The notes: a model not told the origin generated them from the letters alone. A DNA stretch of 64,000 nt from Perkinsus chesapeaki ATCC PRA-425 (GCA_013115145.1 JAAPAO010000025.1:1-64000), one strand, 5' to 3'; positions 3,940 to 48,200 are shown, counted from the first letter of the stretch. Translations and numbers: made by a program.

Positions 3940-6900
3940 CTAGTTCAAAAGGAGCAATTCCAGTGCACCAGTATCCCATCCTTCACCTTCTTTCACAACG
4001 TAATGAACGTCATGCACGTCGTTGAGCTTCTCCGTATTATGACTAACCGACAACACCCCTGTCGTCGGCGGTAGGTTTTTCCTTAATGTCTTGTAAAGCT
4101 CAGCGTGCTGGTCAGCCGCGAGATTACTGGTGCCTATAGCACGGAATTATGCCACGCAAATTCATTGTGTAAGTCTTTACTTTCGTCAAGAAAGAGCCAT
4201 TCGGGCTTGCTGAGGAGCGCGTGCGCGATTTCCAGGCGTTGCGCTTCGCCAGCCGATAGGATCATGCTCCAGTGCTCTCGACGGTCCAACGGGTGTGGTG
4301 GCAATAGCGTGGCTTGCTGGAACTTCGGCGATTCTCCGAATAGTGGCAGTTCTAGCGGAGTAGGAGGGGCGAAACTCGTGGACAGGAGCTGCAAAGATTT
4401 GCGAATCGAATCAAGGACAGAGTGACATTTCAAAGAGGATCGAGGATTTCGCATTAAGCGTGTGAAAGAGCACTATTCTGTAGAACAGAAGATTGCAGAA
4501 TCTGTACTCGTTATAAACAACTCTACAAATGATAAGATCCTTATTATAATAACCATCACCTTCTCCCTGATAATCTTTTATTGAACGACATTGTGGAAGT
4601 CCTCGCAGTGAGGGTTCGACATTTCAACAGGAAGAGCCCAATAACATTTTCTCAGGTCCAGCAAGATACGGTAATGTCACCGTAACGCGCCACAACACGG
4701 TCAGCCATCGAGGGGAGGCAAGATGACTTACGTGCGTGAGACCAACAAGATGAAGTACACATTCAATTTGACGATCAGAATAAGCCTCGGGATCGTCGGG
4801 ATAGCAGACTGCTTCACGCAGCGAGCCTGGGCAAGAACACATTGCAAAGTAAGACTTCGGCAACAACTTACCATCTCTTAAAGGAGCTTTTCGCGAAGGC
4901 AGAAAAAGTGACTTGTCCTTCGGCGGCATGCTGAGCCGAGATCTTGGACCAACGAATCTGATATGGCATTGACAACGTACAGTGGGAATCTGAGCTTACG
5001 GCCAGACTCCAGCCAAAGCACGCAGGAGACTTGTCTTCCCACTGCCTTCTGGGCCGCTCAAGAGGGCCCATTGCCCTTTGCCGAGTTTGAAGTTGACTTT
5101 CGTTAAGAGAGCCAAATCATCTTCTTTCTTGCCCGGGAGGAAAAATAGACCTTTTGACTCAGTGGGAGTGTAGATGTCGCACGAGTCGAGTGTTAACGAA
5201 TCGTCATCGCCTGAAAATTGATCGTCAAAGTTTATAAGTCCATGCGAATAAGAAGCATGTCTGAGAAATTTATCGACACCAAAATGCTGCATTGTTCATG
5301 AGACACAGCATCGTATTTATACTAGTTAAGTACTCCACGTGGCAGTATATGATATCGAGTATCTATTGAAACCAAAAGCCGAAACACATAGTGGCCACTG
5401 GCGACTATGTCAGCATGTCCCGACTTTTGGCGACTCGCCACGGTGACACAGGGAAATGAAATTTACTTGGCGAAGTATTCATGAAATTTCTCGGAATTTT
5501 TCACGGCTCCCTCAGCTCGTCAGGATCGAGAGATTCAAAACTGATCGACACTCCTCCGAGATTGATCAACTATATCGATCTTTTTTCATTCTTCTTCTCA
5601 TCGTTATCAGATCACAAACCCTTACCAGCAACTGGCTTAAGACCGCTCCGAGTTTTAGACAGGAGATTGAGAGCAGATTCAAACTCAAATAGCCGATTTC
5701 CCGCAGCACGCCATTTGATGATGATACCTAAACAGAGCCATAAAACCCGCACAGATCATCAATCAAGGTGCGTATACGATATTCGCTCCGAACAACCAAA
5801 TTTGGATCACTTGGAATCACTCGACATGTTCGGCAATCTATAACATCGTTCAGTTCCAACATAGCGATCTCCTGCGAAATTATCCATACTTCTCGGCAAG
5901 AAATAACTATTTATAGTTTTTGCACAGCCAAGCTCGCCTACCGTAAGATTGAACGAACCATCTGAGGGCCTCTAGCACATAGCGTAGAGCATGCACTGTC
6001 TGATTAAGATGCCCTAGAGTGATCTGGCTCGAGAAGTAGGCGCCGGAAAGCACCTGGCGAGAAAAATACGACAACGGTTCGGATTGAGATGCAACTTACG
6101 AACAGGGGGAAGATATTGCCGGTGTACTCGAAGAAGGAGTCAAATAGCTTCAAGCGTTTGGTGACAAACATAGATTCATATCTGAGATGCGCTCACTGGG
6201 AATCGAACCCACGCCCTCAACAAGCCTCACGTTATCCGTTTTATATTCATAAAACTTCTCTCGAGTCTGGATAATTCTCGGCCTAAAAGTCGCTGGAGAT
6301 TCTCCAGGTAAAGGCGGTTACCTTGCGCGTGCAGCATCGCGACATTTTCTCCGTGATCTCGAATTCTAATAAGGTCCGATCGAAAATCGGCCTCAACTCG
6401 CTGCGCCGCGTAATCCAGAACCTACCAAGATCACTGTGTGATTTGACAAGGCGACAAAGGCGCTTACAATCAATTGCTGACCAACGAGATGGGTACCGAG
6501 GGATCCTAGTAGACAGTAGACGAGAGAAGTGTACCTGAAGCAGTACAATGTGATAACGACGTATAAAAGAATGTTACTAATGCGGAGATAGATTAATAAT
6601 ATTGATAGAAAATCAGTTACTAATGCGGAGATAGAATAATAATATTGATAGGAAATAAGTTACTAATGCGGAGATAGATTAATAATATTGATAGAGAATA
6701 AGTTACTAGTGCGGAGATAGATTAATAATATTGATAGAGAATAAGTTACTAGTGCGGAGATAGATTAATAATATTGATAGAGAATAAGTTACTAGTGCGG
6801 AGATAGATTAATAATATTGATAGAACATAATTTACTAGTGCGGAGATATATTAATAATATTGATAGAAAATAAGTTACTACTGTGGAGATATATTAATAA

Positions 6901-8883
6901 TATTGATAGAAAATAAGTTACTACTGCGGAGATAGATTAATAATATTGATAGATAATACTGATAAGTCCCTAAAGCACAGTGAAACACGAAATGCATTCC
7001 TTCTGGGCATGTTTAATAGCTGCTTACAAAAGCCAACCGGGCATTCTCAGTCCATGAACACCAAAGGCGTCTTGAGGGGACAGTCGGAATAGAAGAGGTA
7101 AGAAGACAACTGACACAATATGATGGAACATACTCAAGCAGGTTCACTTACGCAAAGTGCCTCCAGAAAGCATCATGCCCGATACCAGAGACCAGCTCGC
7201 ATCTGTAAATACGTTAACCTGAGGAAAATCTTTTCAATTGGAAGGTTTAGTGGTGCCCGACATCGTTAGCGATACGCTGGTCAGGGTTGTCCAGAGTTGT
7301 GGCCTTGGTCGTTGAGCCTTCCAAACCGACTAGCTGCATACGGTAGTGACTGAATGAAAATATACGTATGAAGGGTAGAGTACGAGAAGCCCTCTAATAT
7401 ATAAAATAAATAATAGCTTTACATATACAAAACATTATACAATACAAACATTACCTACAATACATTTTACAAATTTTGTATATAAAACAAAGTGCCAAGG
7501 GTATCCGATGCTCCACTAATCTGACTAATTACATTGCTTGGATGTTATCCTAGCAAATAGATAACAAAACATCAGCTGCAAGTTAAAATACGTTGTGTGC
7601 TATAATATAGCACACAGTGCTCACTTCATGATTCATATGAGTTATTCAGTAACTGAATATAAACTTAATAATATAACAGAGCTTCAGTTATATAACAATG
7701 TAGCAATGAATGTACCGCCGCACCTCACCACAGCATTTTACCCCACCATCAAATAGAGTCTATTTGATAGACCTTGCGACCATCGAATAGACGTATTCTA
7801 ATAATACTTCATCACCGGAAGTCATTGACATTCAAACCGCCAAGTATAAAATATGTCGTCTTACGCTGAGTCCTTCAACCACATCCTCTGCAACCTATCG
7901 GTATGATGAGCTCGCCATTCCAACAGGAACATTGATCGAAGATACATACCGTATGCAGTGAGGAGAATGTCACCGAGGACGCAGAAGATCTAGACTCAAA
8001 ATATCGAGGAGGAATCTCCGATTGTTTTACAAAGTTGAAAATGTTGAGGAGGAAGTTGTCGAAGTCCTTCGCTTGAATGCAGTTCCAGTAGCGCGCAGTG
8101 ATATCGTTGACGAGGTAGGACAGTCCCACATTACACAGTGATAGCAGGGTAAGGACCTGAGAGCGCCGAGGTTGTGAAGCGCTACACCATATCGGCTGTG
8201 TGGTCTAGTGGTATGATTCTCGCTTAGGGTGCGAGAGGTCCCGAGTTCAATTCTCGGCACAGCCCTTCATCCACCTTACAAATGCATATCTCCATGAGCT
8301 CTTCTTCCCTGTCCTTCCAGAAAAGTACGGTTTGATCAGAGCCAGCATCTTGCCCAACTCTAGCGGGCTCGTGCTCCCTGAAGACATCTTCCATTCATCA
8401 GCTAACTTCCACCATGCGAGACTCACCTCCTTGAGTGTTCTCCTGTGGCGTTGTTAGCTCCTCATCGAAGTTCGTTTCCGACCACCGCAGATGAAGATAT
8501 TCGAACGCGACCACCGCAGCCTAACAGATGGATTCCTCTCTACAGCCACTGCCGTCTCGAACAAATCCTTTTTAAAGTATTATAGATTAAACGGTTTGGC
8601 GAATGTGTTCGATTTATACACTATCTTATATCAGACACTGCGGAGAACATAATAATGAAACATCATGTCCAATCGTATAGCCAGGCAGTTAGACCGCAAT
8701 TCCTCCGGAATTTACTCATCAGTCTTGAGGAAGTGAACCCGGTTGACTTAACCAGACGTATATATCCCAACGATGTGTGACACTGCTTACCACCAAAACT
8801 GCGAGCATGGCCCCATAGATCGGCCAAGGTTGAGCAGTTCTTCGTCCTTCATCATCGCTATCGCTCGTCAAAGCAGGAATAAC
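3940..8883 (-). CDS. ABC transporter, ABCD/YddA (SbmA/BacA-like membrane domain + ATPase), multi-exon; further N-terminal exons likely up to ~9600
   Basis: Exons give LIKPYFSG, RYWNCIQAKDFDNF, DNPDQRIANDV, EAA-like EADFRSDLIRIRDHGENVA, Walker A GPEGSGKT, signature LSAGEAQRL, Walker B WLFLDE, D-loop STSNL, H-loop SVSH. Stop TAG ends at 3940. GT-AG junctions checked for several exons. Confidence 0.92.
6182..6230 (-). pseudogene. 49-nt intron containing a tRNA 3'-half remnant
   Basis: GTGAGG-CTTGTTGAGGGC-GTGGG-TTCGATT-CCCAG-TGAGCGC-A-TCTCAG. T-stem 4/5 paired. Removal joins ...MNIKRIT|YESMFVTKRL in frame. Confidence 0.75.
6573..6959. repeat. 43-bp minisatellite, 9 tandem copies, in an ABC-transporter intron
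   Basis: Unit GTTACTA(A/G/C)TGCGGAGATAGATTAATAATATTGATAGA(A/G)AATAA. Copy 9 starts at 6917 = 6573 + 8x43. Confidence 0.95.
8194..8265 (+). tRNA. tRNA-Pro (anticodon AGG), antisense inside ABC-transporter intron 8157-8279
   Basis: GGCTGTG/CACAGCC acceptor stem, CTCGC-TTAGGGT-GCGAG anticodon arm, CCGAG-TTCAATT-CTCGG T-arm; 72 nt. Confidence 0.95.
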
Positions 8884-9604
8884 CTACCAAAAAGCTATCA
8901 GCTGCAGTAATACAAACCATCTATAGCGAACCATATGATTATCTGTAGACGCTCGACATTATATGGCAGTGATGGTAGATGCTCTAACAGTAGGCTCACA
9001 GCAACCCACTGTCAGTAGGCTATGCAGTGTTGTAGCGTAAGGGATATTTGAGCGCAGCATACCGATGCTCGTGCATTCGCTACAGTATAATACATTCCAA
9101 AAAATTTGAAGGAAAATGTAATTAATGAAAAACTATTTGCATTTCCAGTGCATTCCGATGTATACCAACTTTCCTTTCCAGCGATGTTCGTTATACAGAT
9201 TGGTTGCACAGGATGTGGTTCAAGCACTTGAGGAAGTAAGACCTATTTCATACTGGCTTCTATCTTGGGCGGCCAGAGCGACGGGATATAACAACCGTGA
9301 AGTACTTGGTTAGAAGCGGCGTTCAGCGGCACTGAGTCGGATTAAGGCAGGACACGGAGTTCATCACAAAAACGAAGGGATTAGCAAGCTCATTTCGGTG
9401 ACACTGATTCCACCTCAACAATACTTGAATTTGTGAACCACAGAAAATGCCTACCGGTTGAGTTCCGTTCGCGACGGGCTGCTCGCCGACCAGAGCGCTC
9501 ATCAAAAGACTGTCCGTGCTGATCAGAGAAGACTGCATTCCATGCTCCCACAGCCCGGCAGCTCCCACAGCCAAGTCTGTTCCCCGAAGGGCTCCAACCT
9601 ACAA

Positions 9605-9640
9605 GACCCAAGTTCGATCCTCGGATGCGTTATTTTTATT
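9605..9640 (+). pseudogene. tRNA T-arm-like remnant
   Basis: CCAAG-TTCGATC-CTCGG (4/5 stem) followed by a T-run; no recognisable 5' half. Confidence 0.35.
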
Positions 9641-10799
9641 CTTACTGTAGATTGCCCTGCTTCATCCTCTATATGTATAGGTGCTTTGTAGGGCGGTAAG
9701 CCCCTTACTTGACTGCATGGACTGGTAGAGGTATCATCACAAGGTGGAGGGTCGACGAGCGGCTCACCACAGACAACCTAATAGAAGAATCACTACTGGA
9801 GTCATGTGACGACGAATGCTATATAAACGGTCACATAACGGCCGTCAAGCACGACGACCAAATGTCACCATAATGGCGATTATCTTGTTTTCGTCTTTGC
9901 TAGTGTTGATAAGATGGGATAAATAATATTATATTAGTATCATAATAATGAGTATATTATTCGATTTTTAAATGTGAGCAAACGGAGTGTCGCGTTAGTA
10001 AAACCCGTACGGACAGTGGGAGTGGCACGCCCGCGCGCCCGGGACACAATGGCGGTGCGCAATAGTTCTATCCACTAGTCGCATACAATATATATTTTAA
10101 TGTTGCTCGTAAAAATATATTATTCTATTCAAAAATGAAAAGATTCTTTTCTCGCCATTTTTTTATTTTTTTCTCGTGAAATGGGTGCTGCCCGAGAAAG
10201 AATATTTATGAGAACACGCTTCCTACAAAGCTCTATACAAATACAAGTACTATTATAAACTAGTTTATATAGTCTAATATAAGTTGTATTAAAGAACCAA
10301 TATACCATTTTACATAATTATAAAATATCCACAATTCAGACGAAACTAAAAATCCTCTTTTCCTCGACAACGTAGCAATTATATCCGCCCTACCTCCGCA
10401 AGCAGTACAAGTCCGCAGACCAGACCAGGGACAGTAATTATAAACACTTTGAGATGAATACAAAAGTGTATTGGCTGCAACAACAATACTCCACTACTCA
10501 TTAACCACGCAACTCAGTGCAATAATACGGAAATAATATCATCTCATTTATCATGCTCATCATCGGCATCCTCGGCTATATAAGGCAAGTTGCTGTCATT
10601 TAACGTACTGAAATAAAATGTAGCAGAAATACTAGCACTGTCATAAAGTGTCCCTGACGTATCCTAGGTCGATTCGTGCACTGGGAACCATAAAGGAGCA
10701 TAAAATGCAACTCTCCTGTTTAAAATACAAATAAATTTCCTGACAAAACTGCTACTATACTTTCGCATTACGAAGCTCGATGAACACATTTCCGGGACG

Positions 10800-13700
10800 C
10801 TAGACGATTCCTTCAATGCGAGGCAATCCTGTCCACATGTTTAAAAGGTCACCGATGGCTCGCCCACTCAGCTGTCAGCTTTCTTCTAGGAACTTGCTCT
10901 GCCTTAATCTGCGTCGTACTGGAGCCAAATATCTTACCAGCTTCCGATACCTTTTCCACCTAAAATTCATTCCTCCCAGGAATCGAACCCACGCCCTTCA
11001 GCATGGTAAACAACGACCGTACCCGCTTGAACAACGAGCTCGACGCAAGCTTTTGGCCGACGAAGCCCGCGAAGGTTTCGATAACATCTTCATCATCATC
11101 GTCAAATATCCCAACCTCTCCATCAAGCTCACATTTATTAATCATTTGTATCACCCCGTAAACCTGTACAACTGGATGCGAGGAGGATACGTCACGCGCC
11201 AGGAAATTCGCTCGCACAATAGGTTCAAGTCTGAGCCATGATAGCTGGTCACCAAACCAAAAGCTTGGTCCCACAACAGCTTTGCGGTGAGCCACGGAAA
11301 ACGCTGACAAATGCCCAGCAGTGAACAAATAACGATTCAAAAAATTTCCAAGATCAAGCATTATCCACATCTTGTCATCGCGTCGCATCAGACATGAAGA
11401 TCATTAGTGTTATCGAAAACAAAAGTCTCGTCGTAGTGTTAAGCTCTGATCGAGAGGAAGCTGACCATACGGTCTCGATATAGCCCAGCTCATTCCCTCG
11501 AGCCTATATCAAGAGGATGACATGGATGCATTCCAACTGCCATTTTAATCTACAATTTCTCACCTGACCATCCTTCTGGATGGGACACACCAGCACGCTT
11601 CTGGTTCGATAACCAGTTTTCACGTCCATCTCAGAATTGAACCTATTACACAGCGGAATTTCCTGGCGCGTGACTTATTTACCTCTCATCTTCCCAGGCA
11701 TCGAGGATATTAATAGTCTTCCTCTCTCTAGCGCATTCTCCCGCGATCCCTTACATCATTACCAGTCCAACGAGTTAAGCATTCAAGCTCCCATCCCAAT
11801 GGTCGTGGGTTCTATCCCCCCACTTGCCTTTATTCCACGATATCCGTATCTCTTTCATACTATCCGTCGCTATGCTCCACAACTGCTCCTTATTATGATC
11901 AACTAGATACACTGTTGAGCGATCAGCCGACACCTACTCAGACCTCAATCGCCCTGCCACTCATCCAACCTTCGCACCACGATTACTCAGTCCGCTCTGC
12001 CTACACAGCTGGACGCGATAAAATAACTTAATCACTATTTTCGGTATTAAATCCCCAAGACCATTAGGTCTCAAACACCATTATAACTCTTCTCTAACAT
12101 CATTCTACTCCTGCTTATTTCTCGCCCGCAGCACGGCCTATAAGGCCCTACAGCCGCCTCTATCCCACATCGCATCATTAAAACAAACTCCGCGAACCCC
12201 CATATGCCCCCGCCGCATTACCAGTTCATTAGCGTGCATCGCTATCGTCAAAATTGTGCTCTGTGCCCCGAGGTCTTGACTCAGCCCCGAAAGTATCCTC
12301 ACCAAACCTTCAGACTTCTCCAAAGACTTAACTGCTAGTCCATACAGCTCAGCATTCCTATCGCAGCAATTTCATGGCGCGCGACATTCCACTACCGCAA
12401 GGCGATGCCGGCTTGTTGCGCTAGATGCTCTGCTACGAGCTGATCGGATGAAGTGAACGGCTCCAAGTCATCATCTGCAACAAACCGAACCGCGTTTCAA
12501 GAATCATGAGCAACGAAGTAAGAAGTTCATACTAAAACATAGTCATCAGTCTGCTAACAAGTATCATAGAAAAGCTACCATATCCTCAATTACGCGGTCA
12601 TACTCACCCATCATATACAACACAGGAACTCTCCAGTCCCTTACGAGATAACACCTTCTTCTATGATTCCAAGTAGTCTACTAGTAATTCTGAAAGTCTC
12701 TATGAAGTAAACCAACCATACTGACCAATTACATAAAGCCCTATCCATCATATGTTTATATAACTAGCGTAACACAGCGTGATGGCATCAAGCAATGAAT
12801 CCCTAGAGTTCCTCCATACCAACTTTCCCCCAGATTCCCTCTTGATAGTACCATTAGCCTTATTCATTATCTGCAGAACTCCAACTGCCTCTCCATTGAA
12901 GTCCACTACGGGAACAGCAAGCAACTGTCTCGTCCTATATCCTGAACCCAAATCGATCGCCCGATCGATAGCTAGATACGCAACTGCCACGGAGCAACCC
13001 TACCAGTCTTTTTATCAAAGTCGCTGTCAAATCTCGTGTCCTTGTAGCAGTCTGCTATATTAACCTTGAATTCAGGTTACAACCGCGGAAGAATCTTTAC
13101 ATTCCGCCACGATCACGCTTCAACCTAATCTTCAATTTTCCCTCCCCACCAACTTACCGTCTCTTTACTGGCAAACACATGACCAGCAATGCCCTGTTTA
13201 GGATGCACCTACAAACCTCTCCGACTGCCAATCCCGAGCGCCACAAGATTGTCCCACTCGTATAGGTTTGGCTAGATTGCTCGCTGTCAAGGTCAGCATT
13301 TTTGTGTGTGGATTGTAGATGAAAAGCGACGCTCGATCACTTCGCGTTAATCGTAGTGCTTCTCTAATAATCGCATTAATGGTCTCCTTGGGTACCTGTA
13401 GGAGGGCTCCATCCAACGAACCAGAAGCCTAGTGCGGAAAAGATATAATAAAAGGGCGAGATAGGTTCCTAACCACAGAATAGAGATGGAATACGTACCC
13501 CTACGTATAATGGAATACGATGCCCTTGGTCTATTAAATCACCTTTGCAACGACCCTAAATCCAGATACATTGACGAAAGTATCAATAGGTCAATAATGT
13601 GAAATTGAGCAAAGTATATAGTTAAGATTATTCAGCCCCATATTACAATTTCTTTGTTAATTCGTCTAGTCGCCTCCAACAGCCCCTTTAATACGTCCCC

Positions 13701-27099: not shown

Positions 27100-30000
27100 T
27101 ATGCTCTGTATGATCCGATAACATTGACGAACTGGGCAAACGTGCAATGCAGGACCTGCATCGAGGTCAGGATATACTAGCAGCAGGCCCTACTGTCTCG
27201 TGTCATCGCTGGACAATCTGGCATACCAAAAGTGTCCTTGATGGGATCATGTGTCTAAGGCGTACGTGCTATAGTGATCAGTAGTTTTTAGCACCTTCAA
27301 ACGAGACGATGAGGGAGGTAAATTTCTTGTCCTACAATCCCGCAAGCGTCGTGTTGCTTTTTACGAGTATGGGTACCGAACTGGCATAAATGCCACGGCT
27401 CGTGTTATCAAGTGTAACCACTGTGGAGTGAAGGATGATAGCTCGCATCCACTGCTCGATTCAATCGGTCGCTTTTTTGGCCTTTCTTTGTGGACTAGAA
27501 CTCACGGCAAATAACACTCAATATTTCACGCAGTATCCGTGAATTTCAGGGCGTAGAATAATGAGCGGTTAGCGATAACCATAGTCGATAGCGCGAGTCC
27601 CGCAGCAGGACCATATCGCTCGTGAATCTCAAACGGATCCTTATCCGATCCAGAGATGCAATCGTCGGTGAGCTGTGACAGTTCTTCGCGCGTCAGGCAT
27701 ACTTTATTATAACAAGCTCAACCCGAAAAGGTTCACGAGACTGAACTCTTGGGCGAAGCGGTAGGTTGCACGCTGGTTGCCGAGGCAAAAGGAGGAGGGC
27801 GGTATCTTCGCTGAGCTACAGCCTCGAGATCGGCCCAATCTAGACAGTGCGAGGCCACTGCAGTGGCCAGAATCTCTTCTAGTTTACCTGATAAAGCAAA
27901 ATAATCACAAGTCTAGTACAACAGCGTTCCTGGACGGTTGCTCAACACTCCTAAAAGCGATCGGATCGCTGCGATCCCCCCACCTCGTATGGAGTTATCG
28001 TCTTCAATGTTTAGGATTGCCCGCCTTCGATGAGGATTATAACGTAGCGAATTCTGCTCCAAGCACCGAAGGAACTCATGCGTATAATAACGACTCTGAA
28101 ACTCCTCCACACATCCTCCATAATGTTCTAGGATCAACAGCCTACCGGTCTGCCGTGTGCCCCTACTGGTGGAGCTCGGGGGCACAGTTGTGGAATCTTA
28201 TCCGCGGCTTTGGACAAGTAGTACATTGTCCTCTTTATTTCCTGAGATCAGATACATCAAAACCGTTTGCATTTAATCCACCGTAAAGTTTCAAAGTGCT
28301 CTCAAGAAGTATCGGCTCCATAGCGCAATAACGTGACTCCGCACCAACTGCTCCAATATGGACACTCACCTTCCTAGCAATGTGCTTGCATGTCTGACTT
28401 CGCAGCGACCCACTCAGCATTGTCTTGCATCCTAGCAGATTCTTATACCTACATTACAGCCCAGGGAGGGATGAACTACCCAACGCAGTCATCAACGCGG
28501 ACTCACCGGAAGTAAATCTCTATCATCTGCCCCGTAGTAAGACGATCACTGCCAGCTGCCATCCGACGAAAATCTTTCGGGAAAGAAACGAGCCTTTCCA
28601 AAAACTTCTTAATATCAGCATCAGTCGGTTGCGTGAGTTGCAGAAAATATCTGACAACATACTTAAATTGGCCGAATGAATATTTGCCCGCTCAGAGCTA
28701 CTCTCGGTTAGCTGCAGCAAGATCGGGGACTTCTCGGTTGGTATCCAAAAAGGCGACGCTCGATCCGACCGTAGAATAATCGAATATCTCCAGATCTGGT
28801 ATCACGGCACGTTTCTCGGCTTCATCATCATCGACGTCGTCTTTCTGCTGCTGCTGGTCGTCCGAAGCGGCAGCCTGTGTAGGAGTGTCCTTCCCTGCCG
28901 ACCCCTGAATAGTGAAGAAACAACTATTCCAACTGCTGTCCATTCACATCACGCGGTCCATACATCTACTGACCAAGTGGTATCTATCCTATTGGTGCCT
29001 GGAAGAGCAACCCACCTACCCACAATGTTAAAATATCTATCAGACTTCTTAATCAACTGAGTTATAAAACTTCCTAATCCGAGTGTCGAAGAGAAAAACC
29101 TCTTCGTTGACCAACGGTGCAGTGAATTCGACACCACTCTGTGAAATTCCTCCAGGCATATAGGCCAATGCTGCTTAATGCCCTCTATTTACAACGCAGT
29201 GAGTGATTACAATTCTAACACCTCCTCATACCTGACCAGTTCGTCTTCGGTTCCGCCCGGACTGGTTGCGCGGGGTGTCCCTATCCGACGATACTTCTGA
29301 GAGAGAGCAACGGTTCCACTATTTCAACCACTGCAAGCGCAGTAGCCGTTGTAGCTAAATGATCGAGGAAATGCCCTTACCAGTTTTGCCACTCGAACTC
29401 GTCCCCTTGAGCGCCTCTGGCATTCTGGGGTGTTGCCGTCCACGAGCTCTCGCGTTCATTATAGAGCATCCGCCACCAAACCCTTCACTGCTGCCCAATA
29501 GCAAATAATGTTGGGACCTAAACCCGATACCAGCAATCCCGCACAGGTTCGATCCTGGCAAGGTCGACTTGCCTTATTCGGTGCTCAAAAGTCTTTTTGT
29601 CATCTCGGTCATATGGAGTAGTGTCCAGCGCTCGAATTAAGTCGGTCTGCTTGTGACCAAAAACCCCGGAGAGCTCCAGGAGCTCCCTCTGCCGTGCCTC
29701 CGCTGCCTTCGACCACGATCCGTATGCCCGGACATATCTTAAAGTCGAGTCGTGAAGATACGAATTGGGTCAGGTTGTCCTCACTCTCTGGCGGCCGGTT
29801 CCAAAAGCTCCTTGCGTACATCTACGCTTCGCCGTGAGAATTCTTCCGCCACTTCAGGCAAGCCGGGAACAGCCGACATCTTCGAAAATGGCATATCGCT
29901 CGGGATCGTGATAGTCTCGGTGAAATCATCAAAAAACCTGAAGATGTGGGAATTAAGTCAATTCAATTGATTCAAGTGGCAACTTCAAGTACGAAGATTT

Positions 30001-30339
30001 GTCATCGAGGTGTTACTTGGCAGGCATTACAATGGCTCCAAGGGATTTCCTTCGTTCAGGAGAACAATGCAGTAAGAGCGGGGGTTCGCTCCCAGTCGGT
30101 GATTTAAGAAAGGAAGCTTGAACATTGACAAATATTGGGAATAAATAAAACAAATTAAGTTGAGAAAAAATGGAAAACGCTCCACGATGGGTTCGAACCA
30201 CCGACCTTGTGGTTAACAGCCACACGCTCTGCCTACTGAGCTAGCGGAGCCACATCAACATACTATGCTTCCACAATACGACCGAGCATTGGTATAGACA
30301 GCTTATCTTACGGTTCAGCACGAATTCTGATTCCGCCAT
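27100..30339 (-). CDS. Hypothetical multi-exon gene (possibly two genes); 3' end uncertain
   Basis: Phase-consistent exons from ATG 30339: MAESEFVLNP|SFLKSPTG...AIVMPAK|FFDDFTETI...EPAARE|YVRAYGSWSKAAEARQRELL...; later exons include YFLQLTQPTDADIKKFLERL. No family recognised. Confidence 0.6.
30178..30250 (-). tRNA. tRNA-Asn (anticodon GTT), sense inside intron 30117-30311
   Basis: GCTCCGC/GTGGAGC acceptor, GCTC/GAGC D-stem, TGTGG-CTGTTAA-CCACA anticodon arm, GGTGG-TTCGAAC-CCATC T-arm; T-tract terminator follows. Confidence 0.96.
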
Positions 30340-30399
30340 TCTTCACTAACTCCTCATTCTGTAGCTCCAACGTTCCATTGATTGGACTCCAATCAGTCT

Positions 30400-32400
30400 C
30401 TTCGAACCCACCTGACATCAACCCACTGCAAAACTAATGCACGCAATCGAACAGTACCTAAACGCAGCGGCACTGAGACCGGTTGCCCAGTGTCGGCAGT
30501 GTGGCCTCGCACTGTCATCGAGTGACTTGGTAGCTCACTCGACATCTTATTACCGAGGACAATACTCATACCTGAATAAACTACATGAACCACCTTCAAA
30601 GAAAACATGAACCGACAGCGATATTTTCACTAACGGAAATCTGCTGCTTGATGATAGTTATGGAGGCTGCCAGAAAACCAACCCGACGTGAAGCAGCTTG
30701 AACCTCCACAAGCTACCTGCATCCTCGTGCTGGATCACCGAGCTTCCAACAAAGATGAACAGCACGAATAGCAGGAATGCATTTGATGTCATTTCCAACT
30801 TTCTAACGCATCTTTGCACTACAAAACGCACTCCGACCTCTGAAGATCATCTTGTTCACGACACGTGAATTACGACCCTGGATGACTCCTTGATTCGTGC
30901 AAAGCTTTGAAACATCGACAGCCTCGAGGTAGCGGAAACCCAGTTGAATGTAATGACTGACCTACCCCTTTCGAGACGTCTTTCCACATCGGTCATCGAG
31001 CTCTCTGAGTCGCTCCGACAACTGGAAGCCGATGACTCAACCGCCGATGCCAGAACTGCAACATCAAAAAGCGAACGGGCAACCCGGTAAGCATGAATCG
31101 CTTCGCTCCGCCTTCCTCACCTCCCCCAGCTTTCACTGGTTCCGCGGATATCGGGCAAATTCGGAACATGTCCGACACAAGCTGGAGTTGATTAGCCTAA
31201 AGGAAGAGACTGGTAGAAATTCAATCCAGGCGACCTCGAGAGAAATGCTTCTATCAGCCGTTCATCAGGAACCTGCATACCGTTCACTTGCCCGTAATAA
31301 ACAAAATGAAAACGATATACAACTACCAAAAACCGACTGGATCAATAAAGATAATCTCGATCAAGCAAGCAATAATATATAACGCCGGACGACACGGCGG
31401 AAGCCCGCAAACGATTCTTCCTCCCAAATTCCACAGTCAAAGAAAAAAGACTGAAACTGAAAATGCGATAACTAACGTAATCGATCACGCGATCGATTCC
31501 AAAGCTAACCTGTGCAATGAGTCTACAGTCCTGTAATATACTTCGAGTCAGCTCGTTATCGCAGTCGTCAAACGCGGTATCCAGCACGGTTTCTGAAAAG
31601 TAAAGATTAGTTTTCAGTGGAAGTGGCGGTGAGAAGTAAGTGAATTTTCACAGAAGGCCACAGCGAACATCCAACATGGGGAATAATTGGCACGCAATCG
31701 GGTTCGAATCCCAGGGCCGTCACTTACCGGCAGGACTGTCAACCATTTCTTCATCCTCGCCATCGTTTCTGAAAATGGACTTCTGATAAGTGCAAATTTT
31801 TGAATCATTATTTCAGACATTTCAAAGTCAAAAGTTGCTCATGACCTGGAATGCCGAGTGAAGTTATGTTATTTTCCGCTCAACGATGATCAACTTGCGT
31901 GCACGAAATCTCCCCCAGTCGGAGCCTGTAATTATTTTTCAGTTTTTTCTGCGTTTATTCGTCATTCACAAAGCGGATGCTTGGCGGAAACACCATTCAC
32001 AGCGAATGACCTCAGTTCACCTTATCGACGATAATTGCTATTTATCCACCACAAAGAATTACTCCCATGAATCTTCCCAATTATAAGTGATTATAAACTA
32101 ACAAAAATTATCGATTGAAGAATGAAGATTATCGGATAACCTTCGTAGACACTGTACATAATAATAGTACTCATGTTGGCTGCATGAACCCAAACGAAGT
32201 GTAAAATAGCATGCCGTATCTAATAATCGATTATTCCTAATATGTGAAGGCTCTAATGATTATTCTTTACCAGTCAGGGGTTTTTATAATGATATTATTC
32301 AACATAGTTCGGCTCACCTGTTGGCAGTCCGCGAAAGATACTCCTTATACGCTTCTGTCGAGGGGAAGTCAGACTCGGGACGGAGACATTGGGAAGACAT
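30400..32400 (-). CDS. Hypothetical multi-exon gene
   Basis: Exons MSSQCLRPESDFPSTEAYKEYLSRTAN, NDGEDEEMVDSPA|ETVLDTAFDDCDNELTRSILQDCRLIAQ|VPDERLIEAFLSR with GT-AG boundaries. Not fully assembled. Confidence 0.55.
31653..31722 (+). pseudogene. Degenerate tRNA, antisense in intron 31593-31727
   Basis: Acceptor GAAGGCC/GGCCGTC (6/7) and T-arm TCGGG-TTCGAAT-CCCAG at near-tRNA spacing (70 nt); D and anticodon arms lost. Confidence 0.55.
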
Positions 32401-33364: not shown

Positions 33365-35850
33365 TCACAGCTTTCGCAGTCTAGCTCTCCTCTGCCTCTC
33401 AAGCTCGAGGAGCTCGTTCCAGATTTTCTCGTCGAACTCGGTTCGCCCCCGGCTGAGCAGCATCGGACGTAGAAGAGTTATCCAAATGAAGAGGTCTGTC
33501 TGGGAGATGCTGGGATCATCCGTTCGAGCTGAAAAAGTTAAAACCACGTATCCTAGGTCGATGCGTGCACTGGACGCCATCAAAGAACCTAAAATATTTT
33601 TCCTCTGATGTTAGCTCTAGGAATACATTCTCCAGCCGAGCTTCTATTATATCATCATAAAACTGTTTTGCTAAGCCACGCCTACCATTATTTACTCAGT
33701 ATTATTGTAACACCAGTTATCGGACTATTAATTTTTACTCATACCAACTTACGCACACTTTTTGAACACATTTCTGTGACATAGTTTCCATCAAAGACAA
33801 AAAGAAAGCATAGGCTTTCACGGTAAATGAAGCACCAACGCGAATACGATCAAGCGAGATGGGAAAGAAAAGAACCAACCTCTGTGCCATGCATCAGGAA
33901 TGACATCATCTCCAAGTTGACCAGATAAGTCAACCTGTTCCCTCAAAGAGGACACAATCGCAAGATACGCTCTTAACGCTCCCAGAGGATCTGAACCAGA
34001 AATCTTCACTGTGCGCGAAGAAATGCGATCCTTACATGAGCTCTTCTGTGCACATTCGTCAACATCGTCGATAGAAGGTACGAGAGGAAGATGCACAGAG
34101 CAAGGCCCGGATGCGCCGCCTTTAGAGAGAATCTACAAACAAGGAGACTCTTCCGGGTTTTCGGGTTTTGCAGAGTATTCGGGAAAATACAATTGTAAAG
34201 TCGATAAAAGATGCTCCATTAAGCCTCACCGATTCCGAAGTTGATAGTGTAAGACAGTTAACTTCGGTTGGAAACTCAATCCTGGTCGGTCCGAAATCGA
34301 CGCATATCTTTTGGTCGCGAACCTGACCAAGAAAGAATCTTTGCAAGATACTCCATGATTCTACAATAAACAATGTATTATTCAGGATGCGGAATATGGG
34401 CTTACCAAAAGTTGAATCGCCCGTAGGTTATCCACGTTGAAGCGTCCGGGGTTTAATCGGGTTTCATCGAACACGAGATAGGTGCGAGGGGCAATCTGGA
34501 GATCACCGGCGACTGAAAAAGTACAACCGATGCAGAAATACCAAGTACACGTTTGGAGAGGAATTTATTATTAATAATAATAAGTTATTATAAACGTATA
34601 CACTATTCTAATACCGAAACGAATCTCTAAATGAAGCAATATTTTGCGGAAAAATGCAAGTCCCGGGGATCGAACCTCCGACCTCTTCAACCACAGTGTC
34701 GCTCACCCTGTTAAAGCTTCGGCAGAAGGAAAGAGATGAAGAAAAGATGTCGAAGCCTGGTTTTAACTTCTATACCATAACAGCAGAGCCGCTACGGGCC
34801 CTGAAACTAATGCGCGCTTTGGCCGCCCAGTTCAGCGAACATTGCACCACAGATCCCACTGCATCTTTGAGTCCAGCAGTGCTCAAAGTGAGTTTCAAAT
34901 GTTGCAGCCAGGCGTAATAAGTATATATATCGCCGTATACCGGTACAATGTGATAGCTACCATTATATAACAGAATAACCTGGTAAATTGACTAGAACCT
35001 TCACATATGAAAAAGGACTCCTATAGGGACATCAGATTTTCCTACGAGGAACACATTAAAGTTTTTCAACTTATTTTTCACCAAACTTTTTATCATATTT
35101 CTGTATCGGGAATATTTTCTCATCTTCTCAAGGGTAGATGGGCCCCTTCATGCGAACTCACCAAGTTCGTCGGTCTCATAATTTTTCCTCGGGACTAATT
35201 TATCAGAGTTCAGCGCCTCCACGTTAACATCCATTTCTTTCACTCTCGGAAGCAGATCTCCGATGCATCCTAACAATGGACCGCTGCAACCTCGCCTTCC
35301 AATGTGACTCTCACCTGCCAACCCCCTAATGGAACCACCATCGTTGCCTGACAATATGAAACGCCATAATCGATTAAGCGATCGATTATTCCAGCTGACA
35401 TTCACCTTGGGGAAATCCAGATATATTAAGCGGCCAATGTCCAATAACAACGCCGCTGTCGCGGATCGAACCCGGGTCGATTCCTGTCACGTGACGCGAT
35501 ACCATATGTAGCAGGAGATACTCGGCAGCGAGACGGTCACCTTGGAGGGACCTGGAGATTCTATTCCTTTCAGCGGCGCTGCTCGCTCTACCTGCTCAGG
35601 AATCTTATGAGCTCCCCGCGCACTCTTTCAGTGACAAGTTCTTTTTTCATAGATTCGTTTAGAGGCATCTGTAGCATAACATTTGACAGTATAAAGTTTG
35701 TCGTATAATAACACAGATATCATTGATACGGTATCAACTTACCGCTGGGCTCCACTCATTCAATCGTTGGAATGTCAAGACTTGAATGCGACAAGTCGAT
35801 TTCGACGCCGAGGCGCTTGAGAGCTCTGAAGGTTAAAAGCAAACTGTATC
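33365..35850 (-). CDS. MCMBP: Mini-chromosome maintenance complex-binding protein, multi-exon; N-terminal exons probably further upstream (to ~37 kb)
   Basis: Exons SLQGDRLAAEYLLLHM, VVIGHWPLNISGFP, LNSDKLVPRKNYETDEL|VAGDLQIAPRTYLVFDET, DQKICVDFGPTRIEFPTEVNCL, ALRAYL, DDPSISQTDLFIWITLLRPMLLSRG...LELERQRRARL are colinear with remembered MCMBP motifs (GDSLAAEYLILHL, FIPHKDYTANRLVSGLLQL, VIDET). Confidence 0.88.
34650..34700 (-). pseudogene. tRNA 3'-half remnant, sense in the long MCMBP intron
   Basis: GAGGTC-GGAGG-TTCGATC-CCCGG-GACTTGC-A-TTTTT; shares TTCGATCCCCGG...TGCATTT with the 46091 intron. Confidence 0.55.
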
Positions 35851-42565: not shown

Positions 42566-42598
42566 GACGACGATGATGATGATGATGATGATGATGAT
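42566..42598. repeat. (GAC)2(GAT)9 microsatellite
   Basis: Read directly. Confidence 0.9.
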
Positions 42599-42939
42599 GA
42601 CGAAGACTAGACCATCAAACAAGTAGGGGCAGCAGGGGACTGCTACTACTACTACGTCGTCATCATCATCATGATCGAACAAGTATCAAACCGAGAATCG
42701 TGAGAGCAAGGGCAAGTGTACAGCAATAACAGCAACCATCCCTGAAGGCATTAATAGATCCAAAACATTAATCATTCTTACCGAGTACGAAGCAGCTCGG
42801 GAATGGTGGGTGGTGATAAAGATAATCAGCCGATATCGATTAATACAGCCCATGCGCTGTATCCGACCGTAATGGAGCAGCAGAGTTGATAACATCTAAA
42901 ATGATAGACGACTAAGCAATAAGAGAACAAGTTGTATTA

Positions 42940-45050
42940 CCGCCAGCTCCGGCGGCGGCGGCGAGCAAGCTCAAATCTTGCACGCCCCAGACTTCTAAGG
43001 GGTCCATAGTTCTGAGAGGATTAAACGTCCCAGCCGAGAATCGAACCTGCGCTCCACCAAACTTACAGATACTGTGTCGTTATTGGCAACGCGGTGGTGC
43101 CTCGGCGGCGTCTTTGCAACATATAAAGTGGATGTCCTGAAAATCGATATGAAGAAGACACAAGAAGACATTGTCCTCTTTACGATCTGTTATCTCACAG
43201 CATTCAGTCATCTTAACAACTGTATTATCACGAAATGGTTAAGTTGGTCAATGATTCAGTTTGAACCAAAGAGTCGATTAGTAGACTACAGCCGCAGCAG
43301 CAGCAGCAGTAGGGGGTAGCTTACTTTCCTGATTCAAGTGCTTAATAGTATCCTCTCGACCCTGGATGTGCGCAAAGAATAATTGGCAACTTCTCCGTGC
43401 GGTGTTATAATGCAGCCATTCATGGTTCTGAAACAACCGCCACAATTTGTCTAAAACACCCCGAGTTCGAAAGAAAAGCGCCGAAAACATTATGATATCG
43501 TCGTACTTGAAATAGCCTGGCGAAGATGTAGAGATACTCCGCCGATTTGAGGTTGATGAATGCGTAACCTCTGTTGGCATCTTTGGTGGCATCGGCGGGC
43601 AGATACCTGTTCGGGGAGGAAAGAGTGATGTTTATTAATTATTATCATTACAATAAGTCATAACTGTCGGCCAGTCCGGGAAGCATTGCTATCTCTTGAC
43701 GAAGAAGTTGGAGGGAATACCTTTCAAAAATGAGAGACCTCAGAATCGAACCAACGACCTTCAGCATTGAAGTGCGACAGGATAACCACTACGCTGATAT
43801 GGCGGTGAGGGATTGAAAGGAAATGAGAAGCTCCTATTTCGCTGCTTACTTCCGAGGCACACTTTTTATCATCAACGTCGTCCGATCATCCCCTTGACTA
43901 GCCAACTCATCGAGGTCGATGAGCTGAGGCTTCATGCCGATTGTTAGCGTACGATGGCACCCCGGTGGCGCCACTTTAGCAACCTAAAAAGGAAATAACC
44001 CCCCCCCCCGACAATCAGAAATGAACCCACGCTTTTTTCAACGTGCCGACTGGATCGGGACTCCCCATTAAAGGGTGGCTGCAGCCGCGGAGGCACATGC
44101 GATGATGATGCCGCATAGGCCTCTGAAAGGGTTGGATTAGCCTCAGCGTTGGTTGATTGGCTAGTCCCACCTAAACTGGGTACATGGCCGGCTTGTCTTG
44201 GACCCTCAGCCCGATGATCAGCTACGACGCCCTGATGCAACGGTGATGGACTCCTTAAGACATGCTACAACGTACCCTAGTTCGAATGCTGTCGATTGTT
44301 GCTGTTGTTGCAGACCCTCGTCCAGTAGCTGAGACCAGATGAAGTTATTAATGTATTCATTAGTACGATGATGATTCCTTACCCAGGGAAACCAGCTTAA
44401 GGAAGTTATCAGCAACGTCCTGTGGGCGAATGTCCGACCAGTCCAAGCTGCTACCATCACCATCGCTGAGCGCCTAGCACCATAATTCAGTGAAATCAAT
44501 GTGGCGCCGCCCTACCGTCTCCTCACACTCTCCTCCTTCTTGATGCCCCCCGGGGGGCCCCTCCGTCGGCTCTGATTGCCTTAGAGGGCACAACACGCCG
44601 CTCTCCATGGCATGGTCCGATAATACCAAAGGCGTTGAACGACCTAGTGTATCTCCTGCATTGTAGCCAATGTACTGAGGATTACTGGAAACAGAATATC
44701 TGAGGTTCAAGCGCGCATGATACATAACAGGTGGCTTTGTATGCTACCCTCCATTGTAATGTCTGTCAGAAGTCCCCCTTCCTCGCTGGGAATAAGTCGG
44801 GAAGGAAGCCATAATACAATATTTCAATACCTACGATCTTCTAAAATCTCAGACTCCGCGAACGCCACTCAACTGGCTAAATTCAGCGTGCGCACGCGTG
44901 CAGATTTCTTCGCCCGCGTCATGTCACCGATAACGCCGGTAGGTTGTATGGAAAACCCCAGCAGATGGCAATCATCCGACCGAAGGCTTCGGTCAGTCAC
45001 TGATGCTCGAGACCGACTCGACCACCTTCCGTCAAGTACTTCAAACACAA
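42940..45050 (-). CDS. Mei2-like RRM protein (C-terminal Mei2-type RRM), multi-exon; ends approximate
   Basis: Spliced: DDRTTLMIKSVPRK|YSLQLLRQEIAMLPGLADSYDLL|YLPADATKDANRGYAFINLKS...WLHYNTARRSCQLFFAHIQG, matching Mei2 RTTLMIKNIPNKY...YDFLYLPID...NVGYAFIN...YARIQG. Confidence 0.85.
43012..43066 (-). pseudogene. 55-nt putative intron with a tRNA T-arm remnant
   Basis: GTAAGT-TTGGTGGAGC-GCAGG-TTCGATT-CTCGG-CTGGGAC-G-TTTAATCCTCTCAG. Confidence 0.55.
43731..43803 (-). pseudogene. Full-length (73 nt) degenerate tRNA in Mei2-like intron 43721-43849
   Basis: GCCATAT-CA-GCGT-AGTGGTT-ATCCT-GTCGCA-CTTCAAT-GCTGA-AGGTC-GTTGG-TTCGATT-CTGAG-GTCTCTC-A-TTTTT. A and B boxes recognisable, stems broken. Confidence 0.75.
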
Positions 45051-45145
45051 GTCCGAAAAGAGTTCAGAAAACTTCTGTTGGGATAAAGTTTTACCGCCTC
45101 ACATGGCGACCGCAACAACCCTAGCATTGAAACTAATGTTGAGCA

Positions 45146-45225
45146 CCACCTTACGCCGAATCGAACCCACGACCTAAGGAGAAGAGACAGTGATGCACCT
45201 TATTGCCTTAGACTGCTCAACCCTT
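45146..45225 (-). pseudogene. tRNA-Leu-like remnant immediately after the KH gene stop
   Basis: GAGCAGTCTAAGGC (cf. Leu D-arm GAGCGGTCTAAGGC) ... GTCTCTTC ... GTCGTGGGTTCGATTC; begins at a GTAAGG donor-like site (45227). Confidence 0.55.
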
Positions 45226-45228
45226 ACT

Positions 45229-48200
45229 CTAGTGTTTCTTGCTCGGGCGGAACTTGGCCTTCTTCGGCTTTCCAGCTGGGTGGGCGCCAAGCGGCGGGAA
45301 CTGCTCCGTCGAGGCGAGATCTACCGGCTCCTCCTTAGAACTCTCCGAGGCCTGCTCACACAATCTACAAAAGCTTTCTAATCCCATCGCCTACCTTCTC
45401 TGAGTGACCAGCATCTCGTCTGGCAAACAGGAACGACTTGGTCTCTGGAAAACCAAAGCCATGCGGATGAACCTCGGCTACTCCTCCCTTACCAGCATGC
45501 GCGGGCTCGTTCTCCTTTTCGGCATCAGGAGACTGTACAGTTATAACATCCTTACGAGCATCTGCAACAATAAAAACATTATCCAAGGCCCGAACGAAAA
45601 TGGTGACCGAACAGAGAGACAACTCCGAACCACGTAACCGCGATGATGATGAAGCCCGCAAGATATTTGCACGAAAAGTGCATGAAAACCCTCCTGATTT
45701 GAGAAAACAGATGTTGAACTCGGCGAGTGAAATTACACAGTGAATGCCAATAATTGAAAGAACTTTTGTAACGAGTATAAAACACAGTTCATCACACCGA
45801 GGAGGTAGCACAAAGACTTCAATCGCAGCTAATAAAATACAACGTTAGCTGCGCTCAAACGCATTCTACACAAGTATCTAAGCTTGAAGCGTGCACGCGA
45901 GTTCCCTGCTCCTCACTCAATTCTTCCTCAATCATAGTGACTGCCTTATCGACAGCCGCCGGTAAGCCAGTAATGGTGACCTGAGCAAATGATGACGATC
46001 CTGGAGCGCAAGGAGAAGGGCGGAGACGAACTTACTATCTGATCTTCACCAACACGAATATCATGACAAACAGATTCTTCAGTGATTCGCCTGAAATGCA
46101 GCAACCGGGGATCGAACCGGGGACCTTTCGGTTGTTGCTGCTTACCTGATAGTGCGACCCTTTGGACCGATCAAAATACCCATCTCATCAGATCGCAGCT
46201 CAATCTGTTTGATCGTGTACTTGGACAACTGCTTCTGTAAACCATCCAAAAACCTGATCAAAATGAACAACCATCACAACTGCGGCGGCGGCCATTTAGG
46301 ATGTGAATCATGCAGGGTGTATATGAATATAACGCACAATCGCAATCGTTAACCCTCTATTGGAGAGAGAGCTCGAATCAAGGAACCAAACAAACAGCTT
46401 ATCTCGGTGGACGATGAAACTGGTGAGACTCTTCTCCCAATTCTCGATCCCCGTCATGTCCTTAGTTATAGCATAAATCATATAAAGTATGTCATAATAA
46501 AACATAAGTTGCCCTCTTACTTATTAAAGTCGGCAACAGCCTTATCCTTGTTCGGTTTCAAGCCATAAACGAAGACGGCTCCATCCGGCTTAGAGTAGTA
46601 CAGAGAAACCGCAGCATCTCTCTGAAACAAAAATACCCTAACCCGGGATAGATCACACGACCCCTCCAAAGAAAGGCAGCCCCCTTAACCGGTAGACCAC
46701 AATAGAACGCAAAATCTCACCTGAATGTCCTGCAAAACCTTGCACCTATCTTGCAGCATCGGCTGGACTGCTTCTTCGGGCACCGCGACACTCACCGGCG
46801 CATAGAACTGCTTTAACTGAAAATGACAAGATAAGCCTCATCGATACCCAGCAAGCGAGAACCTGCTGCTCCGCTACACATCAGCTTCCACTGAGAAAAT
46901 ACTTCCTATCGAAATCTTTATTATTGCATTGACTCCTAGTTCATGCAACGGAAATGAATTATGAAAATATAAGACAACGAGTTGGAATAAACTTACAATT
47001 TTATAAAATTCGGTCTTGTGATTTATTACATCGCATTTGCTCCCCGAGGTAGAAAGTAATCGTTAAAAATATTCCGCACAACGTTCAGGATCCGTGGAGT
47101 ATCGAAACCCGCACGCGCTAGATTATCGTTACCAATTCCTTAGCACGCTCGCGTCCCTCTTGAGTGCCCCAGATATCCATGTAGCTCTCCTCATCCTTAT
47201 TCTGCGCCCTGAAAGAATAAAAAACATCATAGCTGAGAGACGAACCCAGGACCTGCGGATTACTAGCAGCTTATTATACCGCTAGGCCAAACAATCCGAT
47301 GCTTACCGACGGAAGAATATCATAGCCTCTCCATTCAAGGCATTATTGACGCTCGTAGTAGTGGTTTCGCCCCACGTCTTAGTGTGAGCCCTACAAGCAA
47401 ATCTCGTCGGTAGCAAGCCTCACCAACTTACCTCGGCACTTTAACGGTCTCGGTCGTGAAGGAGCACTTCCTGATGAGATCCAACACATCATCTCGAATG
47501 CGAGGGAACTCCTTTCTGGCCGAGTCATCAACAATTATGCCAATCTAACAGCACCAATTTACAAGGTTCTATTTACAATGAGACCTACTTGAGATGCTTC
47601 TAAGTTTTCTGGGTTGGATCTAGCAATCGTTACACCAGGCTCCTTGTTTTTAAGATGGGATACGCGACCAAGCATGTATATCTGAAAACACTCGAAACAC
47701 TCAAACTGGGTAGGATACAAATTATAGAGATACCACTAAACTGCAGCATAGTAGGATTTGATCTACGAGATAGCTTATCATCCCACAAGTGTGATGCTGT
47801 GGGTTTCTGATACGTGGAGATACAACGAATTTTTCAAGAGAAATTCTTTCGTTCCAGAAGGCATCTCTTCCGGACCCAACATCCAATATATGTACTCATG
47901 CTTCTCAGCGATGATGATAGGGCATACAGCAAGCAAACGCACAAGCTCCTTTAATGTAGACCCACCTCTTCGATGGTCTTGTCAGGGTTCATAGTGGTAT
48001 CGAACAGCTTGTCCAAAACCTCATCAGTCGTGTCGATCAGTTCGACATGAAAGCCGGCAAGTATCTGCAATAATAATAATTCCTAAGAAACTATTCACAG
48101 TAGGCTTCATTACCTTAGCGATGACCTTCGATGCGGCCAAAGCTTGGTCTCGTGATGGAGCTCGGCAGTTCACCACAGCACCGTTGCCGCTGAGGGGCGC

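Follow-up and report, generated by a model that had tools for sequence, protein, structure and literature searches.

The window analysed here is a 64-kb stretch of the Perkinsus chesapeaki genome (JAAPAO010000025.1 of assembly GCA_013115145.1; window and record coordinates are the same) in which several short predicted introns of protein-coding genes consist largely of the remains of tRNA genes. P. chesapeaki is a parasite of shellfish that can be grown in culture. A preliminary description of this DNA had named six such introns, numbered here 1 to 6 in the order of their coordinates, and had assigned them to four genes. All six fall within gene ranges annotated by NCBI, and the "ABC" and "GAF" hosts of that description belong to a single annotated gene of 1238 amino acids (aa); therefore, the introns reside in three genes, referred to as the GAF+ABC, Mei2-like and KH genes (Table 1).

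The six introns are predicted from sequence; all lie on the minus strand, begin with GT and end in AG, and their excision joins open reading frames. The codons that are open on either side of the junction number 63 and 58 for intron 1, 126 and 36 for intron 2, 44 and 23 for intron 4, 42 and 47 for intron 5, and 37 and 29 for intron 6. Each intron reads, in sense orientation, through the end of a tRNA variable loop, a T-stem, a TTCGAT-type loop, seven bases, a discriminator, a T-rich tail and AG. With GT..AG ends, restored frames and this in-register T-arm layout, the claim that all six carry a sense tRNA 3' end is borne out. Three or four of the five T-stem pairs can form in these introns, and all five in intron 6 if G-U is counted. 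Intron 1 is composed of GTGAGG, 12 nucleotides (nt), a T-arm with a perfect B box (6199-6209), the acceptor strand TGAGCGC, discriminator A and TCTCAG. Intron 2 is, over its entire length, tRNA positions ~19-73 plus AATTTTAG, and terminates in an in-frame TAG. In intron 5, GTAA is followed by a minihelix (a 7-bp acceptor stem and the T-arm), A and TTTCAG. The longest two retain most of a tRNA: intron 4 has a 45-nt leader, a near full-length tRNA ghost, five T (T5) and GAAAG, and intron 6 runs from GTAA through a full-length ghost with a decayed B box into T6ATTCTTTCAG. Remnants of the D-, anticodon- and T-arms are recognizable in both, together with the T5 or T6 run. The A at tRNA position 58 (A58) lies 21, 23, 29, 25 and 21 nt before the next exon in introns 1 to 5, as described previously, and position 58 is indeed T in intron 6, where the distance is 31 nt rather than the 30 given earlier.

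Conserved domains support several of the junctions. The exon preceding intron 1 matches ABC_membrane_2 positions 188-229. Removal of intron 4 joins ...TTLMIKSVPR/K/YSLQLL..., which we take to be the start of a Mei2-type RRM, and the following exon matches positions 34-64 of Pfam RRM_2. The exon before intron 5 matches KH_1 positions 3-22, with positions 48-66 found two exons further on. Intron 2 sits exactly between the codons for FKR and VEK, and FKR and KEK are adjacent in a 72%-identical intron-less homologue (P0025 on contig L007). This 616-bp contig is of uncertain type, possibly a transcript, and its GC content is 61% compared with 46% in the window. It was the only sequence recovered in a search with the GAF exons, and BLASTP detected no similarity past the intron 2 junction. 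The apparent tRNA register of intron 2 seems to reach into the exon through an A-box-like sequence, TTCAAGCGG; we rejected this stretch as tRNA-derived because it is conserved as coding sequence (LFKR) in the homologue.

That the inserts are tRNA-derived, as proposed previously, is supported by their in-register layout, by the arm remnants in introns 4 and 6, and by an excess of tRNA 3' motifs across the window. The motif GGTTCGAWTCC, allowing at most one mismatch, occurs at 10 sites against 1.98 expected. The signature RGGKCNNNNGTTCRA (RGGKC-N4-GTTCRA) was found 9 times against 0.19 expected, with no shuffled sequence containing more than two, and GGTTCGANYC 13 times against 0.63, so that these two signatures are enriched 20- to 50-fold. 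A-box patterns showed no clear enrichment in the same type of test (15 against 11.6 and 6 against 2.05 expected). A D-arm is recognizable in only 5 of the ~12 relics, among them introns 4 and 6 and a ghost at 49.7 kb, and in 9 of 12 a consensus B box (GGTTCGANNCC) stands, at zero or one mismatch, by itself rather than in a working tRNA. ARAGORN and the Rfam tRNA model (RF00005) called only two tRNA genes in the window, tRNA-Pro and tRNA-Asn. The Rfam model reports no relic at E values up to 10, even in searches of 4.5 kb or 0.2 kb. ARAGORN at lowered thresholds gave 42 and 238 calls, which we regard as noise. When eight relics were folded, only intron 5 was more stable than its shuffles (z = -2.76, 2 of 200 shuffles); z for the other seven ranged from -1.55 to +0.99. 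The relics are thus tRNA-derived sequence, and are neither working tRNAs nor, apart from intron 5, unusually stable folded RNAs.

Relics and intact tRNA genes also occur elsewhere in the window (Table 1). The two further remnants previously placed at 31653 (antisense) and 34650 (mid-intron) correspond to the antisense ghost at a GTAAG donor and to the sense relic in a 649-nt intron, respectively. The 3' end of the tRNA-Pro gene lies 14 nt from a minus-strand GTAAGG donor; the exon below this candidate intron weakly matches the start of ABC_membrane_2. The ghost at 45095..45228 begins directly after the KH stop codon and is therefore intergenic or in the 3' untranslated region, not intronic. 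Unannotated DNA at 24950-25010 (minus strand) contains TAGTTTAGTGGTTA, which resembles an A box, and ~40 nt further on GCTTGAATAC, which resembles a degraded B box; together they may be a tRNA ghost whose B box has decayed. The string TTTTTATTCTT occurs in the trailers of two relics that are otherwise unrelated, at 9633-9645 (plus strand, antisense, GAF+ABC gene) and 47209-47224 (minus strand, sense, KH gene); the match may be due to chance, as the DNA is T-rich, or to a tRNA 3' flank that the two have in common. A B-box match at 35472 lies within a coding exon conserved with Perkinsus marinus and was dismissed as chance; matches at 49997 and 40169 are doubtful.

Table 1. Host genes, predicted introns, tRNA genes and tRNA relics in the window (positions in JAAPAO010000025.1)
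Feature	Position	Strand	Details
GAF+ABC gene	~3000-14218, ending at 14218	minus	NCBI gene call, 1238 aa; product matches GAF, ABC_membrane_2, ABC_tran
670-aa gene	27733-32400	minus	NCBI gene call
RRM_2 (Mei2-type) gene	42840-44608	minus	NCBI gene call, 307 aa
KH_1 gene	45229-48606	minus	NCBI gene call, 479 aa
Intron 1	6182..6230	minus	49 nt, phase 2; GAF+ABC gene
Intron 2	10960..11022	minus	63 nt, phase 0; GAF+ABC gene; B box 10979-10989, perfect
Intron 3	43012..43066	minus	55 nt; RRM_2/Mei2-like gene; B box with 1 mismatch; support from frame alone
Intron 4	43721..43849	minus	129 nt, phase 2; splits Mei2-type RRM
Intron 5	46091..46145	minus	55 nt, phase 2; splits KH_1
Intron 6	47209..47306	minus	98 nt, phase 2; KH gene
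Intact tRNA-Pro(AGG)	8194-8265	plus (antisense)	inside candidate 123-nt intron 8157..8279 (minus), GAF+ABC gene
Antisense T-arm relic	9590..9645	plus	inside GAF+ABC gene; discriminator and TTTTTAT abut minus-strand GTAAGA donor
Antisense B box/T-arm GGTTCGATCC	29530..29570	plus	4 of 5 stem pairs; inside 670-aa gene, exon or intron
Intact tRNA-Asn(GTT)	30178..30250	minus (sense)	within 670-aa gene range; T4 and T6 runs follow
Antisense tRNA ghost	31655..31727	plus	~66 nt, perfect B box; discriminator touches minus-strand GTAAG donor 31723-31727
Sense relic in 649-nt phase-1 intron	intron 34513..35161; T-arm ~34660-34685, then T5	minus
Rearranged class-II-like tRNA ghost	45095..45228	minus	8-bp acceptor pairing; B box with 1 mismatch
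Near full-length tRNA ghost	49650..49735	plus	perfect B box, T5; intergenic between KH gene and 267-aa gene

The position of the tRNA remains relative to the splice sites is more regular than their orientation. Seven of the intronic cases are sense and three antisense, a difference that is not significant, and sense orientation does not hold as a rule, given that tRNA-Pro and the relics at 31.7 kb and 9.6 kb lie antisense right next to GTAAG donors. In nine of the ten resolved intronic cases, the tRNA 3' end points toward the nearest exon: the distance to the 3' splice site is 6-16 nt for six of the seven sense relics, and the distance to the donor is 0-14 nt for all three antisense cases. In the six named introns, the T-run and pyrimidines that follow the discriminator lead without a break to the AG. 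This bears out the part of the earlier proposal that placed the remnants, with their terminator-like T-run, at intron 3' ends; that the terminator serves as the polypyrimidine tract is an inference from this arrangement. Where the window is annotated, introns cover ~10 kb and intergenic DNA ~17 kb, so that introns make up ~37% of the non-coding DNA, yet five of six relics there are intronic (binomial P ~0.03). The excess of relics in introns over intergenic DNA is suggestive only.

The relics do not form a repeat family. In an all-against-all BLAST comparison, similarity extended over only 10-35 nt, mostly less than 25, around the T-arm. The best pairs were introns 1 and 2, where the 19 identical nt noted earlier were recovered (100%), and introns 2 and 4 (25 nt, 92%), a degree of likeness that falls short of an introner family; acceptor strands differ among all relics. 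No common tRNA-unrelated body emerged from the same comparison, and no target-site duplications, poly-A tails or flanking direct repeats were visible on inspection of the flanks of the six introns. The suggestion that the inserts resemble short interspersed nuclear elements (SINEs) is therefore not sustained. Given that similarity is confined to the T-arm, that acceptor strands are distinct and that the Rfam model does not report them, the relics are old, independent remains of many tRNA genes.

A cross-species comparison was obtained for the relic at 34.67 kb. Orthologues of a gene at 52.6 kb (154 aa) are present in P. marinus and Perkinsus olseni, and their loci align with the window at 33.4-40.7 kb and 52.6-54.7 kb; the KH/Mei2 block was not found in these loci. 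In P. marinus, the block at 41000-52500 (the Mei2-like, KH and 267-aa genes) is missing from the syntenic position (locus L004, 10447-10600), where an MCM_bind gene and a 148-aa gene lie ~150 bp apart, which indicates either a rearrangement or an insertion of ~11.5 kb. The 649-nt intron that holds the 34.67-kb relic is the exact positional counterpart of a 315-nt P. marinus intron (L004 13956-14270), with both in phase 1 and the flanking exons conserved. The P. marinus intron has no T-arm, and its best B-box match has three mismatches, which is the mode of 500 shuffles; accordingly, conservation of the B box above that of flanking DNA was not seen for this relic, the only one compared. Given that P. 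marinus shares the intron without the relic, the relic did not create it; either the P. chesapeaki lineage acquired the relic in an intron that was already there, or P. marinus lost it. Other ghosts do occur in P. marinus; one of them, at L004 18260-18350, is in sense orientation and precedes TTTGATTTGTTCCAAG. Intergenic DNA of P. olseni (L006 5290-6370) contains an intact tRNA-Arg(TCG), next to which lie a T-arm relic and a T-arm-like unit of 46 nt that is duplicated in tandem.

We favour the explanation that the relics are decayed ordinary tRNA genes of many kinds that were nested in spliceosomal introns, which later shrank, and give it a probability of about 0.55. The starting state would be intact tRNA genes lying within the introns of genes that encode proteins, and tRNA-Pro and tRNA-Asn would be surviving examples. 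Packing would bring the 3' end of the tRNA, together with its terminator, the T-run, up against whichever splice site is nearer, and would leave the 5' leader in the intron interior. For sense copies this would be the 3' splice site, and the T-run with the pyrimidines behind it could double as polypyrimidine tract; antisense copies would place their 3' end against the 5' splice site. Once tRNA function was lost, internal deletions would shrink the intron toward the ~45-60 nt that is typical locally, leaving next to the splice site the variable loop, the T-arm with its B box, the acceptor strand and the T-run. Packing of the terminator against the splice site would explain why the 3' end survives and why, in sense copies, the T-run leads into the AG. 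The relics range from full-length ghosts with T5 or T6 (introns 4 and 6, 31.7 kb and 49.7 kb) to bare 3' thirds (introns 1 and 3, 34.67 kb), a range that progressive decay would produce; the ghosts of introns 4 and 6 and at 31.7 kb would be intermediates, and introns of 49-63 nt holding a 3' third the end state.

Several observations weigh against this explanation. The relics are few. Enrichment is confined to 3' parts, to the B box and not the A box, a pattern that neutral shrinkage alone does not predict and that is in keeping with insertion of 5'-truncated copies or with selection for the B box. In introns 2, 5 and 6, one contiguous piece of a tRNA gene lies between GTA(A) and the T-run and AG, as an intron-creating insertion would leave. 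The junctions of the six introns are predicted from frame, domains and gene ranges; none of the words sampled from 42.5-47.5 kb was present in the two P. chesapeaki RNA runs. Finally, the cross-species comparison covers the relic at 34.67 kb, which lies outside the six named introns.

Two of these observations, the contiguous tRNA-gene pieces and the excess of 3' parts, lend weight to an alternative in which the introns were born from tRNA genes, copies of which, 5'-truncated or not, together with their T-run trailer, would have inserted into coding exons and been spliced out from the start. The GT would be supplied at or near the 5' end of the insert (GGTA of the D-loop in intron 2; GTAA plus tRNA G1 in introns 5 and 6), and the T-run with AG at its 3' end. 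Introns 2, 5 and 6, which from end to end are one contiguous tRNA-gene piece and its trailer, are accommodated directly, as is the excess of 3' over 5' parts, and intron 2 lies exactly between codons that are adjacent in the intron-less homologue. That homologue, however, is the contig of uncertain type and deviating GC content described above, and the exonic part of the apparent tRNA register of intron 2 is conserved coding sequence. Moreover, the donors fall at differing tRNA positions, neither target-site duplications, poly-A tails nor near-identical copies accompany the inserts, and the sole relic with a P. marinus comparator resides in a pre-existing intron. Any such gains would be old, given that decay has put the relics beyond what the Rfam tRNA model reports. 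We therefore consider intron birth unlikely. A broader version, in which tRNA genes would be a recurrent raw material for introns, inserted into exons as ready-made mini-introns (GT in or before the D-loop, a pyrimidine run and AG after the acceptor end) whose surviving B boxes then became sites for transcription factor TFIIIC, seems similarly doubtful. Selection on the B box could also act as an extension of nesting and decay, with which it is compatible: B boxes may be kept as TFIIIC landing sites inside genes transcribed by RNA polymerase II (Pol II), where they could affect chromatin, Pol II passage or local transcription by RNA polymerase III (Pol III), by analogy with extra-TFIIIC sites and old relics of tRNA genes. 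The yeast ZOD1 and ETC loci offer precedents (PMC5356446), and the B box is at zero or one mismatch in 9 of 12 relics even though the relics have lost their stems and acceptor pairing and draw no report from the Rfam model; the A box is not kept comparably. The argument is partly circular, as the relics were found through their B boxes, and ghosts with decayed B boxes exist (intron 6; ~24950-25010). The relic is absent from the only orthologous intron compared (34.67 kb), and binding is putative, predicted from sequence. We hold this extension tentatively, at somewhat less than even odds.

A role at the RNA level, in which the T-arm or minihelix would present A58 as the branch point, approximate the splice sites, or be released by RNase P and RNase Z as a small tRNA-like RNA, is very improbable. 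It could draw on the stable minihelix of intron 5 and on the location of A58 21-31 nt from the 3' splice site, yet the other seven folded relics are no more stable than shuffles, T-stems are mismatched, most acceptor strands have no partner and position 58 is T in intron 6. RNase P and Z cuts in intron 5 would also leave GTAA and TTTCAG in the mRNA, creating an in-frame TAA. We read branch-point motifs by eye in 16 relic-free introns of neighbouring genes, using provisional gene models constrained by product length; about half contain CTGAG, CTGAC, CTAAG or CTCAC at -13 to -27. The T-loop UUCGAU is unlike the CTGAG, CTGAC and CTAAG motifs of these introns, and A58, the branch point suggested previously, is thus not favoured. 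The T-stems of introns 4 and 6 do contain such a motif in their 3' strand, CTGAG at -20 and CTCAG at -26 respectively, 6 nt downstream of A58, and position 64 would be the better branch-point candidate in these two.

The genes around the relics have features of their own. The GAF+ABC protein fuses N-terminal GAF domains to an ABCD-type half transporter (ABC_membrane_2 and ABC_tran). Either this architecture is unusual or separate genes were merged in the model. Directly upstream of the start of this gene lies a retroelement pol gene (RVT_1, RNase H, integrase; 14982-18754, plus strand). A fast-evolving family of TIR-domain genes has two members in the window (20807-22893 and 61503-64000); the open reading frame at 20.8-22.3 kb is 100% identical to P. 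chesapeaki protein FOL47_004382, paralogues within P. chesapeaki are 35-56% identical, and the best P. olseni matches reach at most 48%. Just downstream of the Mei2-like gene, a near-palindromic hairpin (42578-42679) matches the mir-598 model with ~30 bits on both strands (E ~0.03). Antisense within the same gene, 44098-44219 (plus strand) weakly resembles a C/D-box small nucleolar RNA (Afu_513, 18.9 bits), with AUGAUGA and a terminal UGAUC. Codon bias in the window was too weak for a dynamic-programming gene finder, which chained the whole window when unconstrained; models constrained by product length varied with the intron penalty and were not used as proof of annotated introns. A protein search with a stretch of the window that is only one-third exon matched only an unrelated bacterial repeat protein, and a scan of JGI metagenomes gave no match.

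Parallels to the Perkinsus relics exist in several systems. Introner, or invasive intronic, elements are found in Micromonas and dinoflagellates as well as in Amoebophrya. Those of Amoebophrya, an alveolate relative, are likewise non-coding inserts whose ends coincide with intron ends (PMC7789003), but introners form near-identical families with terminal repeats or target-site duplications, whereas the Perkinsus relics have only the universal T-arm in common and no duplications. SINEs derived from tRNAs, and TFIIIC-bound Alu elements, similarly bring Pol III A- and B-box heads into introns of Pol II genes, where B boxes can bind TFIIIC (PMC7014570); the relics differ in having no tRNA-unrelated body, LINE-like (long interspersed nuclear element-like) tail or poly-A, and in their descent from many tRNA genes instead of a single master element. 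The phrase "tRNA genes within introns" appears in PMC4999229, and nested tRNA genes such as those of Caenorhabditis elegans resemble the intact tRNA-Pro and tRNA-Asn, which lie within Pol II gene ranges in either orientation; the Perkinsus relics, in contrast, are dead copies that form nearly the whole of introns of 49-129 nt. The closest likeness is to yeast ZOD1, which is described as an ancient tRNA-Ile gene to which the Pol III machinery is bound, and to ETC1-8, which are occupied by TFIIIC only: these too are degenerate remains of tRNA genes or isolated B boxes that have outlived the tRNA, with the B box best kept (PMC5356446). There are about ten yeast loci, mostly intergenic and with measured TFIIIC occupancy, whereas about twelve Perkinsus relics, known from sequence, occur in 64 kb and mostly form the bulk of short spliceosomal introns. 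Full-text literature searches found no paper on tRNA-derived spliceosomal introns, in Perkinsus or elsewhere, nor on dead tRNA copies filling short introns.

Altogether, about ten predicted introns in the window are built largely from worn-down tRNA genes that retain the B box, a promoter element of tRNA genes. How introns are born and what very short introns contain are old open questions, and tRNA genes are a recognizable, datable class of sequence that, by a rough estimate, makes up the majority of some 5-10% of the introns in these 64 kb. For annotation, such introns will light up in low-threshold scans for tRNAs or SINEs, and the geometry of the relics can predict intron ends. In a parasite that can be cultured, it becomes testable whether introns are born from Pol III genes and whether B boxes in Pol II genes are kept for TFIIIC.

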